From sequence record OP589283.1: a DNA stretch of 64,000 nucleotides; one strand, 5' to 3'. The notes beneath the pieces were generated by a model that saw nothing but the letters and a program-made list of their open reading frames with translations, searched no databases and was not told where the DNA came from. Shown piece after piece: positions 3,792 through 51,049 of this stretch; position 1 is the first letter of the stretch; each line of letters begins with the position of its first letter. The position numbers were made by a program, and so were the translations under genes.

Positions 3792-4205
3792 ATGACTAAC
3801 GCCACTACCCCTTTAAAAACGTTCGAAGTTCCTTTCACTAAAGAGTTCCATAATGTATTAGAAAGTAGCTTTTCACGCGCAATGAAAAAGGCGGTAAGAA
3901 GAAAAAGACTTCCGATAATAGCTCCTATTTCGGAAATTAATAATAACAACACCAGTTTAGTAATGGGTGCGTTAACAACTTGCCAAATTGGAGAATTGCT
4001 AATTAATAACATCTCTCCATTAGAAAATGGTGGTGTAAAAATCTCGGGTACGCTCACTCCTTTCGGGGATGGAGCCAGACTGTTCATAGAAGCGGTCAAC
4101 AATGGTACCTTAACTGACAGCATTACAAATCTTTACGGACTATGGGGTCAAGAAGACCATAAGTTTGTAACAGTTTTAGGGTTAGAGTCCTCTCTAGCTA
4201 AGTAA
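3792..4205 (+). CDS. hypothetical protein
   Basis: 137-aa ORF with AGGA SD, downstream of the promoter motif. Confidence 0.7.
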   Translation: MTNATTPLKTFEVPFTKEFHNVLESSFSRAMKKAVRRKRLPIIAPISEINNNNTSLVMGALTTCQIGELLINNISPLENGGVKISGTLTPFGDGARLFIEAVNNGTLTDSITNLYGLWGQEDHKFVTVLGLESSLAK

Positions 4206-4211
4206 CCACAA

Positions 4212-4244
4212 AAAGGGGATGTCAGGAGTCCCCTTTCTTTTTTT
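4212..4244 (+). terminator. intrinsic terminator
   Basis: AAAGGGGA...TCCCCTTT stem followed by a T-run. Confidence 0.65.
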
Positions 4245-42000: not shown

Positions 42001-42970
42001 TAGCACTGGTTAAGGTATTTAACGCATCATACTTTTCACTCCGGGAGTCTTTACCAAACTTCTCGTTTAACATTTCACGAATACCGCCAGATTTACTAAC
42101 TGCGGTATTGTAGATGCTTTCTCTTAAATTCTTTTTAACAAACTGACTGGTGGTAGTCTTTTGGAAATCAGACATCGCTGTTTGTTTGTTAATGGCTTTA
42201 AGCTCCTGAATCGCTCTGTGTTGAGCTTTTTCCATGAACTTATAGAACTTAGCGCTGGTAGCATATTGTCTCGCTAATAAGCTGATTTTAGCCTTATCGT
42301 TAGCCGTTTGAACACGTTGCTGATAGATGACAATATCTTGCAACGTTCTGTTCATTTGACCCATGCCGGATGCAATAGCGTTGCTGCTACCTAACAGGTG
42401 ACTTGCAGTCTGAGTGATTGTTTGACTAATTGCATCTCCCACAGTAGATAATGCAGAAACGGTGTTGTCTCCGCTTTGTGCCACTGTGCTAACTAATTGG
42501 TTAACTTCTTCATCAGAAGTTTCTTCCATCTTAATCGTGTCATCACTACTTGAGCTTGACTTCTCCCAATCACTGAAGTCGTGTTTAGAAAAGCTTTCAA
42601 CCCCCTCTGAAATCTTATTAGGCAAGTACCGGTCAATCTTATCTTTTGAAGATTTTGCGATAGATTGCAGGTTGACCATACTTTCATGGGTGTTATTTTT
42701 AATTTCTTGAATCAACTCACTGCGTTGTTGTTCAAGACGTGAAATATTACTAAAGAAAGGTTTAAAACTGTTGGGGAGAACGCGTTCTAATGTACGTAGA
42801 TTCGTAGAAGTGTCACCGTAGGTTGAATCAGTCGCACCTGCCAAAAATCCAGTAACAAAACTTTTTAATTTGCTTTTAGGTTTTGACGAATCGAAATCAT
42901 CATCAAAACTCATATCACCTTCAAATGGGTCATCTCCCCAATCGAAATCATCATCGAAATTATCACTCAT
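36089..42970 (-). CDS. tail tape-measure-like / cell-puncturing protein with C-terminal GH19 (chitinase-like) muramidase (phiKZ gp181 position)
   Basis: About 2290 aa from ATG 42970 (MSDNFDDD); long helical regions, hydrophobic Gly/Ala segments and internal repeats; C-terminal NAYVESGGF..ENLKY...GDGWRYRGRGFIQLTGKNNY. Confidence 0.85.
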   Translation of the reverse strand: MSDNFDDDFDWGDDPFEGDMSFDDDFDSSKPKSKLKSFVTGFLAGATDSTYGDTSTNLRTLERVLPNSFKPFFSNISRLEQQRSELIQEIKNNTHESMVNLQSIAKSSKDKIDRYLPNKISEGVESFSKHDFSDWEKSSSSSDDTIKMEETSDEEVNQLVSTVAQSGDNTVSALSTVGDAISQTITQTASHLLGSSNAIASGMGQMNRTLQDIVIYQQRVQTANDKAKISLLARQYATSAKFYKFMEKAQHRAIQELKAINKQTAMSDFQKTTTSQFVKKNLRESIYNTAVSKSGGIREMLNEKFGKDSRSEKYDALNTLTSAIEMTASMSEGMELDMFNIAGGLAGEYAVNALIPKLLKSGWTKKRIRSFIRKNPKLYKQLKGKYAWLDDKGGRLSYLTSNTEGLVNLAAKHSSSYDDYEGQDLSYDDYVERMQEEGKKPLNKVVWWTQEKIKAGATHVGNRLTEDLYNSSGTRITNKLRRHADLANPAKWSLRNDLTLNEVIPAHLANINLSLEKIRTGNNSLKAEHYDIVKARFIGQKERDSSVMSRVFAKNEVGSYADSSLRVVDKLDKDGVLTNDKTLRGKLAALVARNQDKGLAFSPYSYLELEGEGFTKAEAEKVRQLMISQWGLTQDDIDKFKSGNLGSVLEALAGIKDIKRLNEVSESYNYLGQSAQSIADRFDEMKAAGNTDALRRAGILKEDDTFDNELRWRLIEEYAKGNDPLSKTMEKAESKSKSNFNNGGFNSLQTPKANQDTEQPTAIDYTVFRELNENIKKLDFSKFDLGGLKNLEPTLAKINSGIADVAKNTADMKALLERVAKEGITTKTIVSRKEKQEKDEAEVQKQGILERIKGFGSGLFSGGMDKILKHDPLILGGLLGGLAATAFHDPKMAMLIGGVSALTVGYMKFHEKAQARGVYDDEDIYEEGAESPLLEAERLKRGEYYCAVAKKVLTSWKEIIGAVVTKTGALVASAYQLSKKLWTSKGKPILLAGLNKGKDLLFRAFRWLDPLNRLTKLKDAAVTRVKQSAVYLKTDTGVSRTPVLTRKGFQEGWYFDENGNPVTSWSDIKGPVYDRDMEPLITQTDYDNGLCNIFGVSLDTTKSTLGKVSKWLGEKFGIMKERFNPAMNRAKEMTKNAFTTDLTPVVSSVDRIYDLLMAHWKYSKTPPRFNDPVTGEPMPAEPGTAGVTPPVSSDKSKEGTVDPISKQRRKKAKGETPTTDKDGKPFVRENSFEDLKQEKEEKEEKEYRRSFLDMVRGLGKDKEKKEEKKGGLLSLLTSGFGLISGLLPKIATGILSIGGTLVSGIAAIVGALGGSWIPDFGGDKDLTPEQRKQNKADKEKAKREKVKAGNKGKAVSRFLKGGKLLGAGAALSYGTSALVSSGIVEEGGLVDDVSGVASTALGVAGTWGMANSVLGLGGYSVGGLLSSAAAGIAGLLSWPVVIGAAAVGAVGYGAYKAYKHFDKPKLPAQIRMAQYGVADSQSDLAARVFNLERFLEEYVVIKGTSASLSEQADVEGMLRLFLQNPKDGKEVEAFLSWFTYRFKPVFLNYCGTMQALDVKGMEAYDSDEDIIRYRIAKDVQRAINGITPNVYDVTPRIDKDTLLINLDNTTTFTDNLFEDWKELLGDALKTDVTTQLKMESKASLEAKRDELKQIARDDNFNGKNYFERTANLRELQDVEQKLKFLNNEAVVKFKSGNDLSVTDLMPEDGTLDPFVALRVGMYGVSLINQSEVEAVLYLERYCEKYVSINGQEVTFSKTPIDVYSEVSSVFGNNVSNRGTWINWFNSRFLPAFLGYMSYYNEYGTGAPGKNWTKLSATAKYKIAKALTLTKSLTGRRNLVIETTSYSAFKDGIDDELGEKILAYLSVLEEKSSRANLIDPIAEAKRTSTKAYLGKIVETNTKGQETLYTSNRTTGNDAKSRKDFMLAGGYGGNTYTKTYFEPIKGNTDTKMLDYGGVTANEGDDQGISVPRELAEQLIIKEMLARGFTDPREIALVLANAYVESGGFKKSTENLKYTDPKRMVDLFSEVKTIEQARSLMKAGPVTTANTVYGGAKGLSLGNTNPGDGWRYRGRGFIQLTGKNNYKSIGDRLGLDLVGNPKLASEDPNIMAKILVEYFASNKKMRTITENDNFAFASQGVNANLPDMDKRFGYYKDYLSSLVDGTLTAENKDEDKKAETVSTAAIPKKAPYQKSSIPFAGVAAPDDSVVNKQVATQPTGTTKPDGVPASLAPLPKETPAAPTPVQVINNNDELKKLLAGGINTNDPNSSKLLANILVELQKMNQSKNDPMTVALK

Positions 42971-43001
42971 ATGCTTACTCTCTTTTAATGAGGTTAGAAT
43001 A

Positions 43002-44462
43002 ATGAAACCAACCAGAATTAAATTATTAGACCCCAAAACAATTTTTCCACCTCTTATTAACGAAGTGAGTAGTGGGGACACGTTTGACCGGGGCACGCAC
43101 AACCTTCACGAAGAAGGGTTATATTCTCCTACCATCTTTGGTAGAATCGGACGTAAAGACCGGTTTTCCAAAGAAGGGTTTATCAATACGGGTGCACCTA
43201 TTTTAAACCCCACGTATTATAAAACTATCGTGGGATTGAACAACGGTCAAAACGGTTTATACGCCGGTATTTTGAAAGGGATCGTTTACGCAAAATGGGA
43301 TGCCCAGAAAAAGGATTTCATAAAATCCGATATCATCGAAGGAAGAACAGGATATAGTTTCTTTTTAGAACACTTATCTGAGTTCGCACCTGAGTTAAAA
43401 GATTCCCATTCCCGTAAGCAAGCCATTAAGTTAATTTTGGAAAACAAAGATAAAGCATTAATGAAACGCTTTATTGTCATTCCGGCAGGTTTACGGGATA
43501 TTGAACATCGCCCCGATGGTGGGGTTAAAGAAAAGGAAATTAATAAAACGTATCAACGTTTAATTTTCCGTGCCCGTTCTTTACAAGGTATTAACGAGCG
43601 TGATGAGAACGATCCTGTTTACGATAACTCTCGTGCATCCATTGGTGAAATTGTTAACGAAATAGACCACGAACTGTTTGAGATGTTAAACGGTAAGAGT
43701 GGTTTCATTCAATCTAAAGTAGGTACCCGTGGTTTAGTCAGTTCTACTCGTAACGTGATTGTGGCCAGACAAGTCAGTCGTACTCATTTAGACGAAGATG
43801 ACGGTAAAGGCATCAATAGCACCGATATCGGTTTATATCAAGCAATGTTGATGTACAATTATGCTTGTTTACATGAACTGATAAACGGTTGGTTATCCAC
43901 TATTTTTACAATAGGGGCTAACGTGGGTAAATTAGTTGATACCAAAACCTTAACTTCAGAATACGTGGATTTGAAACCAGACACCATCAGTAAGTGGACA
44001 ACCGTTGAAGGGTTAAATAAACTCATCTATGGTTTCAAGAACGTCCATCTACGCCATAAACCAATTGTGGTGGAAGGTTACTACCTTGGGTTAGTTTACG
44101 ACGATGGTAAAGAGGTTAAACTACTCAGTGACATCGGCGAACTTCCAGATGGAAGGGATAAAAAGTTTGTCACTCCATTGACGTACTTTGAAATGTTTTA
44201 TTTAATTTGTAACCAAGCCATTAAACAAAACCTGATGCAACAAACGCGTTACCCCATTATCGGTATCGGTAGTACGTATCCTTCTTATAACAATCTTGTT
44301 ACGGGAAGTGAAAACAAACCCCGTAACGTATTAAATGAAATGTGGGAAACCGAATATCGTTGTTTAAGTTATCCTGAGAAATCAGAACATCCAGTTTATT
44401 ATGACGCAATGTCTGTTGACATTAGTCGATATGCTAACTTGGACGCTGACAACGACGGCGAT
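43002..44462 (+). CDS. virion RNA polymerase beta' N-terminal subunit (phiKZ gp180-like), exon 1
   Basis: GLYSPTIFGRIG, VIPAGLRD, LNGKSGFI...RNVI, RYPIIG; ends at the catalytic LDADNDGD. GAGG SD before ATG 43002. Confidence 0.9.
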
Positions 44463-46263
44463 TTTCTTGTACATTAATAAAGATGTGATTATTGCACCTT
44501 CGTGTTCTATTTTATATAGATAAAACCGAGGAAATAACATGTCACTCTTTACTTTACATTATCTTAAACTTCCAGAGTCAAACATTACGTATGAACTCAA
44601 GAATGATTTTTTGTTCTACGATGGAGAAACCACTCTCCCCCACTTAACTTTTACTGACAGCCCAGATAAAGTGTTGGTTAAAAATCCGTCTCCTAAGAAG
44701 GAAGGTGACGCTTACCTTACACTGGATAGAGGGTTACTTATTCTTTTTGCATGTCGTCGTTTCTATCTTCCTCTCAGTTTATGGAGGATGGTTGATATTC
44801 AGTTTTTAGATGATAACACAAAAAATTATGACCCTCGTAACTTATATGTCATGTACAAAGAAAAAATACCCTATCCTGAATTGGAGGGATTTTACTACAT
44901 ACCAGGACACGAACTGAACGTCATCAATGAAAAAGGAGTGGTGTTTAATATTCCTTGCTCTAAACTCAGACCCCCGAAAATAAACAATGCGCACATTGAT
45001 AAGAACACCTACATCGGTACCACTGTAGAGATAAAACCTCATAAGTTTGTCACAAGGGTGTTACATCGATTACTAGGGTTGGTATTTAAGAACCCCCCCA
45101 AGGGTTATCCTAATTGTGTGGTAGACCATTTGAATGCGGTAAAGTACGATTTCTCATTGGATAATTTAGAATGGGTATCGTCAGGTGAGAATAATGACCG
45201 TGCTAAACAAATGGGGTTACGAACGGACAATAAACGAGTTGAAGTGTTAGACACTAAAACAGGTATAACGTCCACATACATCTCAGGTAATAGTGCAGCG
45301 GCCGCTATAGGCTGTTCTAACGGGATTTTGAGTAATGCGTTTACAAGTGGTTCTAGGGTAGTTAAAAAGCGGTGGAAAGTAAGGTACGTTGGAGAAGAAG
45401 TCAATTGGGATTCGATTTCAATCAAACCCAGCGGAAACTCAGAAGTAAAACCTATTTTAGCCAGAAATGTTGTGTCTGGTCATATTCGTAAGTTTCCGAG
45501 TGTAAGGGAAGCCATGCGAGTATTGTCAAAAGAAGGTGTACGCGTTCATTTGGCATCCATCACCAGACAAGTTAACAACTCTGCGGAGAAACGAATAACA
45601 GGCGGGTATGAATTCAAATACCAAGATGATAGTACACCTTGGCATGTATTCACTGAATGGGATGTAGAGGTATTTAGACGCGGCCTCAATACTCGTACAC
45701 CTGTTTATAACGTTACCGATGTTACCACCAAAGAGTCAACCATTTACTTTGGTTGGCAACCAGTTGCTTTATTAACTGGAGTAGAAAAGCGTGCTGTACT
45801 CATTGCAGCGGCTGAGGGTGGTATACTGGCTCGTAAGTTTAAGATAGTAAAGTTAAGGTAATAATGTATTATGTCCAGCTAGGCGCGAAAGCCCTAGACT
45901 GTTTTCCTTTGAATTGACTGGGACGACCACAAAAGTGAACCGCTACTGCTCATTAGAAATGATGAGTGACAGAGACGAAAGTCAGAAACAATGGTGTTCA
46001 CCTGCCCTATGCTAACCAATAACGCTAAGGGGTATTGACAAGGGTCTATCAGCAGCTAAGCTCCGTACGAGGGTTATCCCTCAGGAGAATGTCCAACGAC
46101 TAAGGCCTAGCCAGCCTGTACTCATGACATGGATTCGTTGTGGGGAAGTGGAGGAGACCTAAGGTTACAAAAGTAACTATGGTTAAGATATAGTCTGTCC
46201 CTGGCTTAAGAGCAAGGCGGGTGTCTGTGCACACCGGGTGTAAGTAATACACCGGACAAAGAG
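44463..46263 (+). mobile_element. group I intron (~1801 nt) carrying an HNH endonuclease ORF
   Basis: P AATTGACTGGGA (45912), Q ATCAGCAGC (46048), R GTCCAACGACTA (46091), S AAGATATAGTCT (46185); 5' exon ends in U, intron ends in G; splicing restores DGD-QLNANG in frame. Confidence 0.88.
44539..45861 (+). CDS. intron-encoded HNH homing endonuclease with three NUMOD1-like DNA-binding repeats
   Basis: VVDHLNAVKYDFSLDNLEWVSSGENN HNH motif; repeats KRVEVLD..TYISGNSAA, KPILARN..KFPSVREA and PVYNVTD..IYFGWQPVA; own GAGG SD. Confidence 0.92.
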   Translation: MSLFTLHYLKLPESNITYELKNDFLFYDGETTLPHLTFTDSPDKVLVKNPSPKKEGDAYLTLDRGLLILFACRRFYLPLSLWRMVDIQFLDDNTKNYDPRNLYVMYKEKIPYPELEGFYYIPGHELNVINEKGVVFNIPCSKLRPPKINNAHIDKNTYIGTTVEIKPHKFVTRVLHRLLGLVFKNPPKGYPNCVVDHLNAVKYDFSLDNLEWVSSGENNDRAKQMGLRTDNKRVEVLDTKTGITSTYISGNSAAAAIGCSNGILSNAFTSGSRVVKKRWKVRYVGEEVNWDSISIKPSGNSEVKPILARNVVSGHIRKFPSVREAMRVLSKEGVRVHLASITRQVNNSAEKRITGGYEFKYQDDSTPWHVFTEWDVEVFRRGLNTRTPVYNVTDVTTKESTIYFGWQPVALLTGVEKRAVLIAAAEGGILARKFKIVKLR

Positions 46264-46434
46264 CAATTGAACGCTAACGGGATTGTTGCAGAAGACAGTA
46301 AAGAAGAATGTAAAGGTTTATTCGGTAAACGTGACTTTTACATTGGTGGTGGGGATAACTTTTATTATACCCCGGTTACTGATACATTGGCTTGGTTGCT
46401 TAAATCTGCAACTTCGGGACTTAAATCCGTTTAG
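46264..46434 (+). CDS. virion RNA polymerase beta' subunit, exon 2 (56 aa, QLNANGIVAED...SGLKSV)
   Basis: Open 57-codon frame starting right after the terminal G and ending 8 nt before the beta gene; absent from the ORF track. Confidence 0.8.
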   Translation, partial: QLNANGIVAEDSKEECKGLFGKRDFYIGGGDNFYYTPVTDTLAWLLKSATSGLKSV

Positions 46435-46442
46435 GAAAGATT

Positions 46443-49400
46443 ATGAAACAGGCACCTTTATATGAATTGTGGTATCGTAAGCTCGGGTTACGTAAAAAGC
46501 AAAACATTGCTAACCCAATGTTTTTGTCTTTAGCGGAATTGAGTTTACCGTTATACAGCACAATTCATTATTTAGCAAAACATGAAAATGAGTTAGGCCC
46601 CAGCCCAAGTGAAACGTTAATTTCAAATTGGTTGGGCGAAAACATTTACATTAACTTTGTGAACACCTATACTCCTTATATTGGGAGTATTGGCCCTGCT
46701 GTGTTTGATCTACGTAAAAACATTAAGAAATATCGTGCAAGTCATTTTAACTATAGTTGGATTATGAACATCAATGACGTCTATAAACGTCGTGAAAATT
46801 TGATTGTTTGGAACCACGCTTGTGCGAATAAAACGTTCAAAGTAAGAGCAAGTCTTTTTGCTACCTATGAACGTTATTATAATGATTTCCGTAACGTAAT
46901 CGAAAGTGTTAATACCGTTACTGAAAAAGGATTACGTAATCAATTTTTAAGAATTGAACTACCCAATCGGATGCCGAACTTTTTACGTATTAGTGATGAT
47001 TTAAATCATTTTGCTAAGGTGCGTAGAGAATACGCCAAAACCGGCAAGATGATGCTGAATAAAGAAATGATGCGTCAGACAAAAGGCGAAAGTTGCTATT
47101 GGGTATTAGAGTTACTCAGCTTCTTATTAACAGATTTAGCAACTAATAAGAAAGGGGAAGAAGCTGAAGAAAAAATTAAAATAAGTTTATTTAACCTACT
47201 CAATGATGAGTCTAAACATAAATTAAATATTGTGTTTAGTTATCAAGGTACCGGATTTGTCGTTAACCTTGGTTTATTAGAAAGTTGGTTTAAAGAGCTT
47301 CGCGATGATGGTAGTCGTGTTAATGGTTTCAAACGTTTCTATCTTTCTCTTATCAAGTTGTCTAGCACCGAAATGGTTTTAGAGGACGAAAATGAAGAGA
47401 TTAAAAACACTGTCGAGGAGACTACGGAAGAACCAGAGGAACTGGATGAAGATGAGTCAGAGGCGCCCATTGAAAAAGATGAGCAAAAGGTCGCTGTTCA
47501 CGATACTACTCCTATTCTTGATATTTTCGCTGATCAAGTCGATTCTGATGACGGAAGTCTTCAATCCGGAGGAGACGAGGGAGGGGAAGATGATTCTGGA
47601 GAGCCTGCTGAACAGTCGTGGACCGATCCAGTAGACGATAGTCTATTTGAAGAGCCTGAGGTTGCCACTGAGACGGATTCAGGTCGTAATGTATTCGCTG
47701 ACCCTTCCGCAGGTATTGAACGCAGTCTTCGCTTAAAAGGGAAAGAGAACGGTATTAGCGCAAGAGAATACGCTCTCTTTAAAAAGAAATCGGAGTCTTA
47801 TAAAAACATTGTGTTACCTAACGGTGAAACGATGGAAACGTTTATGAAGATAGACGAAAAAGAACTCCGTAATCTTGACGGTAAAATTAAGGGGACTTTT
47901 GAAACCGTAAAAGACCCTTCGTTATTACAGTCTCGTACTTCGGAATTGCGTAAAGGGTACGTGAAGAAGTTTTTACATAAAGACATCATTCGTACTTTAG
48001 TTGCTTTCCAAAACAGTGGTACCGCGTTAACTGATTTGTCTATCACTGAAGAGGGTGACAAAGAAGGGATGTATGAAATTTATAACGCGCAATTCCATCC
48101 TGTTGGGGGAACTGTTAAAACCGTTCCTATTCGCATGCCGAAAGTGCTACCTGACTGCACCATCATGATAGATGGTAATAAAAGCTATTTACAAAACCAA
48201 CGCATGGAACTCCCTATTCGTAAGGTGAGACATGACGAAGTAATGCTATCTAGCTTTTATGGTACACGATTAAGTTTAAAACGCAGCCGTATGGTGAAGG
48301 ACGATTATCATCTTTGGTTATTACGTCAAATCATCAAAGGGGATAAAATCAACGGTTATCAAATTGCATTGGGTCGTAGTAAAACAAGCCACTTAAAGGT
48401 TCCTCAACTTTATTACACGCTTGCAGCCAAATTTAAATCTATTGCATTTGATGACATGACCTTTGTTTTCTCAATGGACACGTTGATTGAAGAAGACCCA
48501 GCGATTGAAAAGTTGAATTCCCCTGATAGTGTAGTCATCGGTAAAAAGGGTGACAAATACATTACATTGGATGCGTTTAACAACGTTTATGTCGGGGATG
48601 AGTTAAAAGGTGGGTTTACTGAGTTAGTTAAAATCGACCAGCGCAAAGCTCCTGTTGATATGGTGAGTTTGTTGTTGAATAACGTAAACTTCCCTATTGT
48701 TATTTTGTTGTGTTATTATTTCGGTATCGATAAACTATTGCAGGTTACCAAAGCAAATTATCGTGTGGTACCGAGTAATGAGAAAACTGTCTTAACCAAT
48801 GACGAATTCAAAGTCGTATTTAACGACGAGACACTGGTCTTTAACCGTAACGACCGGGTGACCACGTTAATCTTTGGTGGATTAGTTGGGTTGAAAAACT
48901 TAAGTAACTTTAACAGAGTTGACTTAAATAACAACGATAACTTGCTTACGGTGATGGGTTCGGAAAGTAAAGCAAAAATCACTCACTTCTATGAAATGGA
49001 ACGGCTGTATCGTTTGTTCATCGACCCTATCACTAAAGATGAATTAATTCGTCTGAAGTACTCTGTTGACTTTGATTATTTGTTGTTGGATGCTGTTGAG
49101 CTATTAAAAGACAGTTATCACCGCAATGAAGTGGAAATTGAAGAGCAACGGATTAGTGGTTATGAACGTTTAGTTGGACACATGTACACGCAACTCTGTC
49201 GTGCTAACCGTGAATACGGTAACAAGACAACAGGTAAGAAAGTTTTCTCATTAAATCCTGATGCTGTGTTGATGGCCATCCAACTGGATACCAGTTTAAA
49301 CCAAGTGGAAGAGGTCAACCCATTCCACCAAATCAAAAGTGATGAGGAGGTTACGTTCGGTGGTACTGGTGGTCGCGGTGACGATGTAATGGTCGCCAGA

Positions 49401-49601
49401 ACCCGTGCTCAGCTACAAAGTTATCGTGGTGTGATTTCTGAAGCGCATAAAGACAACCAAAAGGTGGGGTATGTTACCCACTTAACGTCAGATGCTCGTA
49501 TCAGTGATTATCGTGGTAACATTGATAGCAAAGAAACAATAACCAATGCAGGACTAGCGTCTGTAACAGGTAACTTGTATTACGGTTCCTTTAAAGATGA
49601 T
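46443..49601 (+). CDS. virion RNA polymerase beta subunit N-terminal part (phiKZ gp178-like), exon 1
   Basis: IDGNKSYLQNQR, QVEEVNPF, VTFGGTGGR, GVISEAHKDNQKVG; ends ...GSFKDD. Confidence 0.88.
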
Positions 49602-49942
49602 CAACATAGGGTCCCCTTATTTGGAAACAGATAAGGTGCTATAACCTCTAATTGCTGGGAGGGTTTGTTAAACCTCATTACACCACTGCGTAACTGGAAA
49701 CGGTAAACGTGAAGGTTTGAAAAGTAATGAGCTGAACCTAGTCAGCAGCAAAGCACCTAAGGTATTGTTGAGATAACAAGATACGGTGTGCGTCCAGAGA
49801 CTATCGCTGAAATGCGAGTAGGGGTCTAGTGTGATTCCGAAACGGGGTTTGCTTACCGTGGACTGAAGAAGTCCTATACGGTTGCATGAAATATAGTCCA
49901 CTGTGTTCGATGATTTCTTATGGATAAGAATAGAGCACATTG
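49602..49942 (+). mobile_element. group I intron (341 nt) without ORF
   Basis: P AATTGCTGGGA (49650), Q AGTCAGCAGC (49740), R GTCCAGAGACTA (49792), S GAAATATAGTCC (49888); exon 1 ends GAU, intron ends G; splicing gives DD-PKR in frame. Confidence 0.88.
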
Positions 49943-51049
49943 CCCAAGAGAACCAGCTTCAGTAACGGCCAAGCATCTCAAATCATGGCGTCATCAGGTT
50001 ATCAAGTTAACCCAATGCGCACAGGTTATGAGGTAGTCATGCCACATCGAAACTACGACCTTTACACTAAGGTTGCTGAACAAGATGGGGTGGTTACTGA
50101 AGTTACCGATAAATATTTATTGGTAACTTATAAAGACGGTTCGACAGACACCTACTTGTTAGGTTATGAAGTGGGTTCTGCGGCAGGTGAGTATCATAAG
50201 CACAATAAAGTAACCGATTTAAAAGTAGGTGATAAATTCAAAGCCGGAGAGGTGATTGGATTTAACGATGTGTGGTTTGCTCGTGACTTCTATAATCCAG
50301 GGCAAGTGGCTGCTAAAACAGGTATCTTGACAGGTGTTGCGTTAACCCAAGGGATTAACGTTTACGAAGACAGTATTAGTATTAGTGCTGATTTCGCTAA
50401 AAAGTCAAGCTCCAGCTTCATTAAGCAGATTAGCTTTAGTGCGGCTTTAAAAGACACCATCGTTGAAAAAATCAAAGTGGGGCAAACAGTCGATCATGAC
50501 CAAGTGTTATTTGAGGTCATTGAAGAGAGTGTTGCAGCACTTAACGATGAGAATGAGGACGCGGCTGATATTAACCGTTTAGGCATTCGACAAGTTAAGA
50601 GTAACCACCACGGTGTGATTAAAAAGGTCGAGGTTTCCTACAATGGTGATTATGCTGATATGAGCAGTTCAGTCTTGAAGTTTGTTAAACCTAAAGACAA
50701 AGAAGTTGCTGACTTAGCAAAAGTCACTAAAAGCAAGATTGTTGACAACCGAGTATCAGGTGGTAAAAACGTTCCTCCTGGTCGTATCAAAGTCCGTGTC
50801 TACATTGATGCGGAAGAAAGCAGTGTGGTTGCTGACAAATTTGTAGTGGGTAACCAAATGAAATGTACTGTTAACAGTATTTACACTAAGCGCATGTACA
50901 CTCAATCTGGTATTCCAATTGACCTCACATTCAGTTATAAGAGTTTGTTTGGTCGGATGGTATTGAGTTTACGTGATAAGTTAGTGGGTAACCAGTTAAC
51001 TGAAATCGTTTCAAAACAATTTGTTGATATTTACAGGGGTGAACAATGA
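49943..51049 (+). CDS. virion RNA polymerase beta subunit, exon 2
   Basis: PKRTSF, YEDSISIS (equivalent of bacterial FEDSI) and DKFVVGNQMKCTV (equivalent of GDKMAGRHGNKG). Confidence 0.88.
   Translation, partial: PKRTSFSNGQASQIMASSGYQVNPMRTGYEVVMPHRNYDLYTKVAEQDGVVTEVTDKYLLVTYKDGSTDTYLLGYEVGSAAGEYHKHNKVTDLKVGDKFKAGEVIGFNDVWFARDFYNPGQVAAKTGILTGVALTQGINVYEDSISISADFAKKSSSSFIKQISFSAALKDTIVEKIKVGQTVDHDQVLFEVIEESVAALNDENEDAADINRLGIRQVKSNHHGVIKKVEVSYNGDYADMSSSVLKFVKPKDKEVADLAKVTKSKIVDNRVSGGKNVPPGRIKVRVYIDAEESSVVADKFVVGNQMKCTVNSIYTKRMYTQSGIPIDLTFSYKSLFGRMVLSLRDKLVGNQLTEIVSKQFVDIYRGEQ

Follow-up and report, generated by a model that had tools for sequence, protein, structure and literature searches.

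A predicted ORF-less group I intron in the virion RNA polymerase beta gene of Shewanella phage FishSpeaker

The gene for the virion RNA polymerase (vRNAP) beta-like subunit of Shewanella phage FishSpeaker (OP589283.1, 203 kb; host S. oneidensis MR-1) is interrupted by a 341-nt element that, judged from its sequence, is very probably (with a probability of roughly 0.9) a functional group I intron; the usual two-step pathway, started by guanosine, would excise it from the vRNAP beta pre-mRNA and give a single 1421-aa subunit. The element was found in a stretch of 64,000 nucleotides, called the window throughout; its region shows 100% identity with the FishSpeaker record. The assignment of the element to the group I introns is well supported by the set of core helices, the U.G pair at position -1, the terminal G, and the match to a covariance model. 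Group I introns in the RNAP genes of jumbo phages are already known, as is the DD insertion site itself; the FishSpeaker intron, an ordinary member of this known kind, is unannotated and unreported, and a literature search for "FishSpeaker" found no paper mentioning the phage.

The interrupted gene and its annotation

The products of the two exons were searched as two separate queries against phrog_3148, an "RNA polymerase beta subunit" profile of 1424 positions. Exon 1 matches profile positions 3-1050 (E 9e-267) and exon 2 positions 1051-1423 (E 2e-120), and removal of the intron joins ...KDD to PKR... in a 1421-aa protein that is collinear with the profile, the break falling at 1050|1051. 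Exon 1 ends on a whole codon at 49601 and exon 2 stays in frame to the stop at 51049, so that 1053 and 368 codons add up to the 1421 residues; a preliminary description of this DNA had foreseen a fusion of two ORFs into a subunit of about 1420 aa by joining GATGAT to CCCAAG. The full-length homology of the protein identifies it as an orthologue of phiKZ gp178, PhiPA3 gp211/209 and EL gp186/187, and tblastn gave matches to EL gp186/187, PhiPA3 gp211/209 and the OBP "virion-associated RNAP beta", in agreement with the vRNAP beta identity that had been proposed for it. By analogy with phiKZ, the FishSpeaker subunit is presumably a part of the virions (PMC11620839).

In the FishSpeaker GenBank record, the exons appear as two separate "RNA polymerase beta subunit" CDSs and an intron feature is absent. 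The exon-1 frame continues for 10 codons into the intron, to a TAA at 49632-49634 within P2, and the first CDS (UYE93572, 46443-49634) accordingly consists of exon 1 plus a 10-codon tail of intron sequence; the second (UYE93573, 50039-51049) starts at an internal ATG, so that 32 codons at the head of exon 2, among them those for the conserved PKR...GQASQ residues, are left out. If the gene encodes one 1421-aa vRNAP subunit, this split is an annotation error, and the same error is found in EL and in several Aeromonas, Klebsiella and Raoultella phages.

Anatomy of the intron

The 5' boundary follows ...AAA GAT GAT, which ends at 49601; on the 3' side the intron ends in ...CACATTG at 49942, followed by CCC AAG AGA (Table 1). 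A string search located the P, Q, R, and S core elements (AAUUGCUGGGA, AGUCAGCAGC, GUCCAGAGACUA, and AAAUAUAGUCC), and a pairing check found 100% pairing in P2, P3, P4, P5, P5a-c, P6, P6a, P7, P7.1, P7.2, P8, P9 and P9a; the coordinates given for a 341-nt group I intron in the preliminary description proved exact. The minimum-free-energy fold alone recovers P2, P4, P5, P5a-c, P6, P7.1, P8 and P9 (z = -2.6). P1 is short, with 4 bp, and places a U49601.G49611 wobble pair at the 5' splice site. In the Michel-Westhof scheme, the criterion for subgroup IA is a pair of additional hairpins, P7.1 and P7.2, located after P7 and before the 3' strand of P3; the hairpins predicted at this position place the FishSpeaker intron in that subgroup.

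The short guide AGGGUC near the 5' end had been proposed to pair with both exons. Its pairing with exon 1 stands, as GUC:GAU with the U49601.G49611 wobble, whereas a P10 is more than the pairing with the CC of exon 2 can bear: this candidate helix (CC:GG, exon 2 with the guide) has 2 bp, no more than expected by chance, and it was left out of the evidence because it has no counterpart in EL, PhiPA3 or L076. The first 9 intron bases, CAACAUAGG, were also considered as a relic of duplicated exon and discarded, the 4/9 matches seen by eye being chance-like; the same question was put to the last 10 bases of introns inserted 10 nt further downstream in related phages (see below), and no claim is made from it.

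Table 1. Coordinates of the intron, its structural elements and exons, the neighbouring genes in GenBank order, and introns in the same gene of related phages.
Feature	Position	Strand	Remarks
Tail fibre gene		opposite	5' of the exons
"RNA polymerase beta subunit" gene	42870-44477		5' of the exons
HNH endonuclease gene	44539-45861		5' of the exons
Exon 1, vRNAP beta-like subunit gene	46443-49601	+	1053 codons, C-terminal ...GSFKDD (ORF list, translation)
Predicted group I intron, subgroup IA type, no ORF	49602-49942	+	341 nt, C49602 to G49942
P1	49599-49613	+	exon G49599-A49600-U49601 and intron C49602 with guide G49610-G49611-U49612-C49613; loop AACAUAG
P2 hairpin	49615-49636	+	CCUUAU/AUAAGG; compensatory changes in relatives
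P3, 5' strand AACCUC	49643-49648	+	6/6 paired with 49844-49849
P4-P5 domain	49653-49747	+	P4 49653-58/49742-47; P5 49662-66/49734-38; P5a-c 49674-49731
P6 / P6a	49748-49791	+	Rfam alignment, pairing, covariation
P7, 5' strand GACUA	49799-49803	+	pairs with UAGUC 49894-49898; expected guanosine-binding helix
P7.1 and P7.2	49804-49838	+	P7.1 49804-49817, P7.2 49821-49838; extra hairpins, subgroup IA type; compensatory changes
P3, 3' strand GGGGUU	49844-49849	+	pairing check
P8 / P8a	49855-49882	+	fold, pairing check
J8/7 and P7 3' strand	49887-49898	+	GAAAUAUAGUC; block conserved in all relatives
P9 / P9a and terminal G49942 (omega G)	49903-49942	+	3' splice site G49942|C49943
Exon 2	49943-51049	+	368 codons and stop; begins PKRTSFSNGQASQ
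Virion structural proteins, head protease			3' of the exons
Intron of Raoultella phage VB_ZK_P1	L002:1399-2832		same gene
Intron of Aeromonas phage PS1	L003:1373-1763		same gene
Intron of Aeromonas phage CF8	L004:1334-1736		same gene

Detection by covariance models

When the Rfam model RF00028 was applied to a targeted region of 651 nt, the intron scored 28.1 bits (E 3.7e-5), short of the gathering threshold of 50 bits, which is a detection cut-off and no structural feature; relatives inserted at the same or the neighbouring site scored between 35.5 and 52.6 bits. A whole-window Rfam scan at the gathering threshold reported only the first intron of the window and not the element at 49602-49942, which was missed again in a permissive whole-window scan with RF00028. 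The RF00028 alignment covers P1 to P7 and P3', and leaves P8, J8/7 and P9 unaligned because of the long P5 and the P7.1/P7.2/P8 insertions.

Given the sub-threshold score and the misses in the whole-window scans, a covariance model, R1, was purpose-built from seven relatives, with FishSpeaker excluded; it has 158 positions and extends from P6 to the 3' strand of P7. Run over the whole window with filters off, R1 matched 49744-49898 over its full length with 98.5 bits (E 3.7e-23), and the first intron of the window with 65.4 bits; a weak match at 43199-43337 (E 0.18) was taken as chance. The covariance-model check suggested in the preliminary description gave a sub-threshold score with the general Rfam model and a strong match with the family model. 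Blastn detected similarity to introns in other jumbo phages and, in the P3-P5 region, to those of Staphylococcus Twort-like phages.

Covariation among related introns

Since P5a, P7.2, P8 and P9 are out of register when full-length introns are aligned with MAFFT, and pair counts for these helices are therefore uninformative, the RNAalifold register and a model-based alignment were used instead. RNAalifold found double changes in 39 of 57 pairs, and the covariation is located in P2, P3, P6a, P7.1 and P7. For P3, 29 of the 30 cells examined in six relatives are paired, with both sides changed in 9. The guanosine-binding helix P7 is identical across seven aligned introns; in L072, a metagenomic phage, it reads GAUCA/UGAUC (L072:5697-5830) versus GACUA/UAGUC in all others, a double compensatory change.

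The exon:guide pairing in P1 is GAU:GUC in five DD-site introns and GGU:GCC in three introns inserted 10 nt downstream; this guide change, matched to the change of the exon triplet, provides comparative support for P1. The pairs on the intron side of P1 also covary, with 1-4 further pairs in each DD-site intron, and a terminal G is present in all eight introns compared.

The predicted splice junction and the active-site motif

The protein sequence on either side of the predicted junction is contiguous at most homologous loci. Among 71 homologous IMG/VR loci, 63 have a gap of zero at the junction; all 42 intron-less junctions inspected conform to D[DS]|[PSTA]KR, with DD in 41 of them and an invariant Lys-Arg. 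Tblastn matches to the two exon ends also abut exactly in many GenBank phages, including Miami, KPN8, BUCTxx100, Joad/RisingSun and several Vibrio phages. These contiguous loci, together with DD-site introns in PhiPA3, EL, L072 and L076, give the presence and absence among relatives that had been named as a check on the intron. At position -1, T is found in all five intron-bearing alleles vs. 22 of 51 distinct intron-less alleles (Fisher p = 0.02), an excess that the U.G requirement predicts.

A phmmer search with the tail of exon 1 against PDB sequences gave no match, and a profile of the intron-less homologues was needed to reach the bacterial beta subunit. In this profile, the stretch ygvtkDDpkRtlfssiqasqav is aligned with a segment of Thermus beta, such that kDDpkR falls on HDDANR (residues 552-557) and the break on HDD|ANR; the equivalence of DDPKR and bacterial HDDANR that had been proposed is recovered in this way. 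The E. coli chain is offset by +121 in the same output, and the two Asp therefore correspond to D674 and D675, and the Arg to R678. This alignment is consistent with the published placement of the PhiPA3 intron just past two conserved Asp, the second of which is E. coli D675 (PMC11620839). Exon 2 alone is similar to a region of bacterial beta further along the chain, which takes in the YEDS/NFEDA segment.

Introns in related phages

A close parallel is PhiPA3, where the intron lies in the orthologous gene (gp211/209) at the identical insertion bond, GAU GAU|xxx AAR CGN (Birkholz et al., 2024, Science; PMC11620839). The two introns have in common the guide GUC, the U.G wobble, the terminal G and an IA-type core; in contrast to the 341 nt, 7-nt P1 loop and missing ORF of FishSpeaker, the PhiPA3 intron is 1352 nt long, with the gene for the HNH nickase gp210 in the P1 loop, and the cores, with about 50-60% identity, fall into different sub-lineages of a tree of 155 nt. 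The intron of phage EL (gp186/gp187) shares with FishSpeaker the bond (DD|VKR in EL), the lack of an ORF, the guide and the sub-lineage; it differs in its length of 415 nt and its 7-bp P1 with a hairpin loop, and is about 51-61% identical. In RefSeq, EL gp186 and gp187 are two CDSs and an intron feature is absent. DD-site inserts of ~406-415 nt are found in EL and most EL-like phages, among them MIZ-Pa99, HHBS47_1, HHBS8_1, phiRU and IR-QUMS; in GXNNE2 and GXNNA8, also EL-like, the gene runs through this site uninterrupted, so that phages which are almost identical are polymorphic for the insert. Two metagenomic phages add DD-site introns of 1511 nt with an I-HmuI-like ORF (L072) and of 378 nt without an ORF (L076). 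All five DD-site introns (FishSpeaker, PhiPA3, L072, EL and L076) combine exon GAU with guide GUC, the U.G wobble and a terminal G.

The introns closest in sequence to that of FishSpeaker, with the same architecture and in the same gene, are those of Aeromonas phages PS1, PS2 and CF8, Raoultella phage VB_ZK_P1 and Klebsiella phage phiKp_32; they gave the only extended blastn matches (66-69% over up to 261 nt). Most likely they are inserted 10 nt downstream, past xKR and one further base, with exon GGU and guide GCC in the alignment column where FishSpeaker has GAU:GUC. The position of this +10 junction follows from the U.G rule and its exact base is a prediction, since a cut one base earlier in VB_ZK_P1 (G at -1) would give exactly the protein of the intron-less phage Miami (PKRALFSG vs. 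PKRSLFSG). The VB_ZK_P1 intron encodes an HNH_3+NUMOD1 ORF.

In the model-based alignment of 155 nt, the FishSpeaker intron shares 68-70% of its positions with the +10-site introns; identity is 61% with EL, 55% with the first intron of the window, and 53-60% with PhiPA3 and L072. A maximum-likelihood tree of ten sequences (window positions 49744-49898 and 46051-46195; loci L002-L005, L072 and L076-L078) separates two groups with 96/98 support that do not track the insertion site: the second FishSpeaker intron groups with EL, CF8, PS1 and VB_ZK_P1, and the first with PhiPA3, L072, L076 and the phiKZ gp180 intron. As a caveat, the alignment of 155 nt is short and follows a model for which seven of the ten sequences served as training set, and the two-lineage split is therefore a lead and no result. 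If the tree is true, ribozymes of two lineages have settled at the DD site, and one of these lineages occupies two sites 10 nt apart.

More distant parallels are the subgroup IA2 introns of T4 td and of the Staphylococcus phages Twort and K, a class likeness that rests on the Michel-Westhof scheme: they have P7.1/P7.2 and a short P1, and interrupt an essential gene where it encodes a conserved catalytic segment. The IA2 phage introns differ in their host genes, and many of them carry or carried endonuclease ORFs in the loops of P6a or P7.2, whereas the relatives of the FishSpeaker intron have them in the P1 loop.

The first intron of the window (44463-46263) and the phiKZ gp180/gp179 intron belong to the same ribozyme family (65 and 85 bits with R1), have the guide GUC past a GAU codon, and lie in an adjacent vRNAP gene; they differ from the intron studied here in interrupting a beta'-like subunit past DxDGD, in their HNH ORF, and in their sub-lineage. 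The upstream exon 1 ends in GGC GAU at 44462, directly after DADNDGD, the counterpart of the catalytic NADFDGD of beta' (ADFDGD in PhiPA3 gp212); by this motif, the upstream gene is beta'-like and not "beta" as annotated. An HNH_3+NUMOD1 ORF (44539-45861) occupies the P1 loop, and the guide GUC lies within AUGUCC near 45870. By analogy with the 3' end of the CF8 intron, the 3' splice site is probably G46263|C46264, which would give DGD|QLNANG... to the stop at 46434; the Rfam end at 46217 is too early, and exon 2 of this gene is unannotated in GenBank. The layout in phiKZ (L078:1386-8113) is the same as in FishSpeaker and runs from gp180 through gp179 (endonuclease) and the ribozyme core (R1 4093-4225, 84.9 bits) to gp178, which is uninterrupted at the DD site.

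Endonuclease content and mobility

No plus-strand ORF of more than 38 aa is present inside the FishSpeaker intron, and no homing endonuclease of its own was found, as the preliminary description had already held. A 90-aa ATG ORF on the minus strand (49668-49940), antisense to nearly the whole intron, matches no Pfam or PHROG family; it is probably spurious. The ORF-bearing relatives PhiPA3, L072 and VB_ZK_P1 encode HNH/I-HmuI-like ORFs, with the endonuclease gene in the P1 loop, which in FishSpeaker measures only 7 nt. In PhiPA3, the HNH nickase gp210 cuts intron-less alleles and the intron marks the homing site (PMC11620839). Since an endonuclease gene is absent, the FishSpeaker intron is most likely a passenger, left after the loss of its endonuclease or acquired without one, and unable to move by its own means.

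It could still be mobile in trans if the HNH endonuclease of the neighbouring intron, or a free-standing endonuclease encoded elsewhere in the genome, cut the intron-less DD|PKR alleles of co-infecting phages. The HNH protein of the window does belong to an I-HmuI-like family with PhiPA3 gp210 (BLASTP E 4e-19) and the Raoultella-phage intron ORF, and both introns of the window share the guide GUC and the preceding GAU codon; yet its identity to gp210 is 24%, which is uninformative on its action at the DD site, and its gene resides in its own intron at the beta' DGD motif, the expected target of that enzyme. Mobility in trans is regarded as unlikely.

Predicted splicing and the structure of the gene product

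For the functional intron that is favoured here, the order of events would be as follows. The pre-mRNA would fold into the P3-P9 and P4-P6 domains, and the 3-nt guide GUC (49611-49613) would pair with the exon-1 end GAU, forming the U49601.G49611 wobble pair. Free guanosine bound in P7 would attack the U49601|C49602 bond; the guanosine site would then be occupied by the terminal G49942, and the 3'-OH of U49601 would attack G49942|C49943, ligating ...AAAGAUGAU to CCCAAGAGA. The predicted spliced junction is AAAGATGAT|CCCAAGAGA, and the spliced mRNA would be translated into one 1421-aa subunit with an intact DDPKR, the counterpart of HDDANR in bacterial beta. Long-read transcriptomics of phiKZ found no evidence that the predicted introns, including that of gp179, are spliced under the conditions used (PMC10914365), and Birkholz et al. 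call the PhiPA3 element a "putative" self-splicing intron (PMC11620839); splicing in this phage group is therefore mainly inferential.

The phiKZ observation, made in one study, would also fit a gene that is truly split, with the 341 nt as a spacer, perhaps the relic of a dead ribozyme, and two virion RNAP polypeptides, the first 1063 aa long and terminated by the 49634 stop, the other starting from TTG 49940 or ATG 50039. The RNAP subunits of jumbo phages are often encoded by separate genes (PMC7598289), the GenBank annotation has two CDSs, and GAGG 5 nt upstream of ATG 50039 offers a possible start for a separate C-terminal polypeptide. Such a polypeptide would, however, lose the conserved PKR..GQASQ residues, and the exon-1 product would end in a 10-aa nonsense tail. 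The break would also disrupt DD|xKR, the part of the protein that is conserved best and that 63 of 71 loci encode without a gap; all ribozyme helices are intact, with 98.5 bits against the family, where a decaying relic should have lost pairings. With an invariant motif at the break and a ribozyme that has kept all its helices, a split gene is considered quite unlikely.

Even less credible is a real intron with its junction elsewhere, past the first GAU (49598) or as DDQHR|TSF (5' near ~49610, 3' near ~49951): GAUGAU offers two GAU triplets to the guide GUC, and an in-frame reading of the first 9 bases of the intron gives QHR, equal in length to PKR, but QHR does not fit the Lys-Arg invariant in 42 intron-less junctions, which rules out DDQHR|TSF among the alleles inspected, while splicing past the first GAU is rejected on pairing (the extra pair C49602-G49610 favours the second GAU), on the retention of both Asp in 41 of 42 junctions, and on the junctions of relatives, four further DD-site introns all being cut directly past the second Asp codon; moreover, with the alternative sites the base at -1 is not U, the intron does not end in G, or both.

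Implications for the phage family

The understanding of how group I introns work is unchanged by the FishSpeaker intron; some interest lies in the missing endonuclease at a site known to be attacked by intron nickases, and in the two-site, two-lineage pattern among its relatives. The intron-encoded nickase of PhiPA3 acts between co-infecting jumbo phages, and intron-mediated interference competition has been demonstrated for PhiPA3 against phiKZ (PMC11620839). Instead of being a decaying passenger, the endonuclease-free intron may persist because its insertion interrupts the sequence recognised by nicking endonucleases of the gp210 type; if this is true, the essential vRNAP gene of FishSpeaker would be immune in such competition. 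Furthermore, the occurrence of the FishSpeaker/EL lineage at the +10 site in Aeromonas and Klebsiella-group phages, with a single guide change from GUC to GCC that matches the exon triplets (GAU to GGU), together with a different DD-site sub-lineage in PhiPA3, would indicate repeated re-targeting of cores among Asp/Gly-codon sites in phage RNAP genes. Both wider readings, protection and re-targeting, are speculative and, taken together, rather doubtful at present. Together with its relatives, the intron shows one ribozyme family inserted near catalytic motifs at three neighbouring sites of the RNAP genes of phages, the guides changing to match, a compact system for the study of intron re-targeting; and FishSpeaker, as a natural allele with an occupied site and no nuclease, offers a comparison for whether the intron alone protects.
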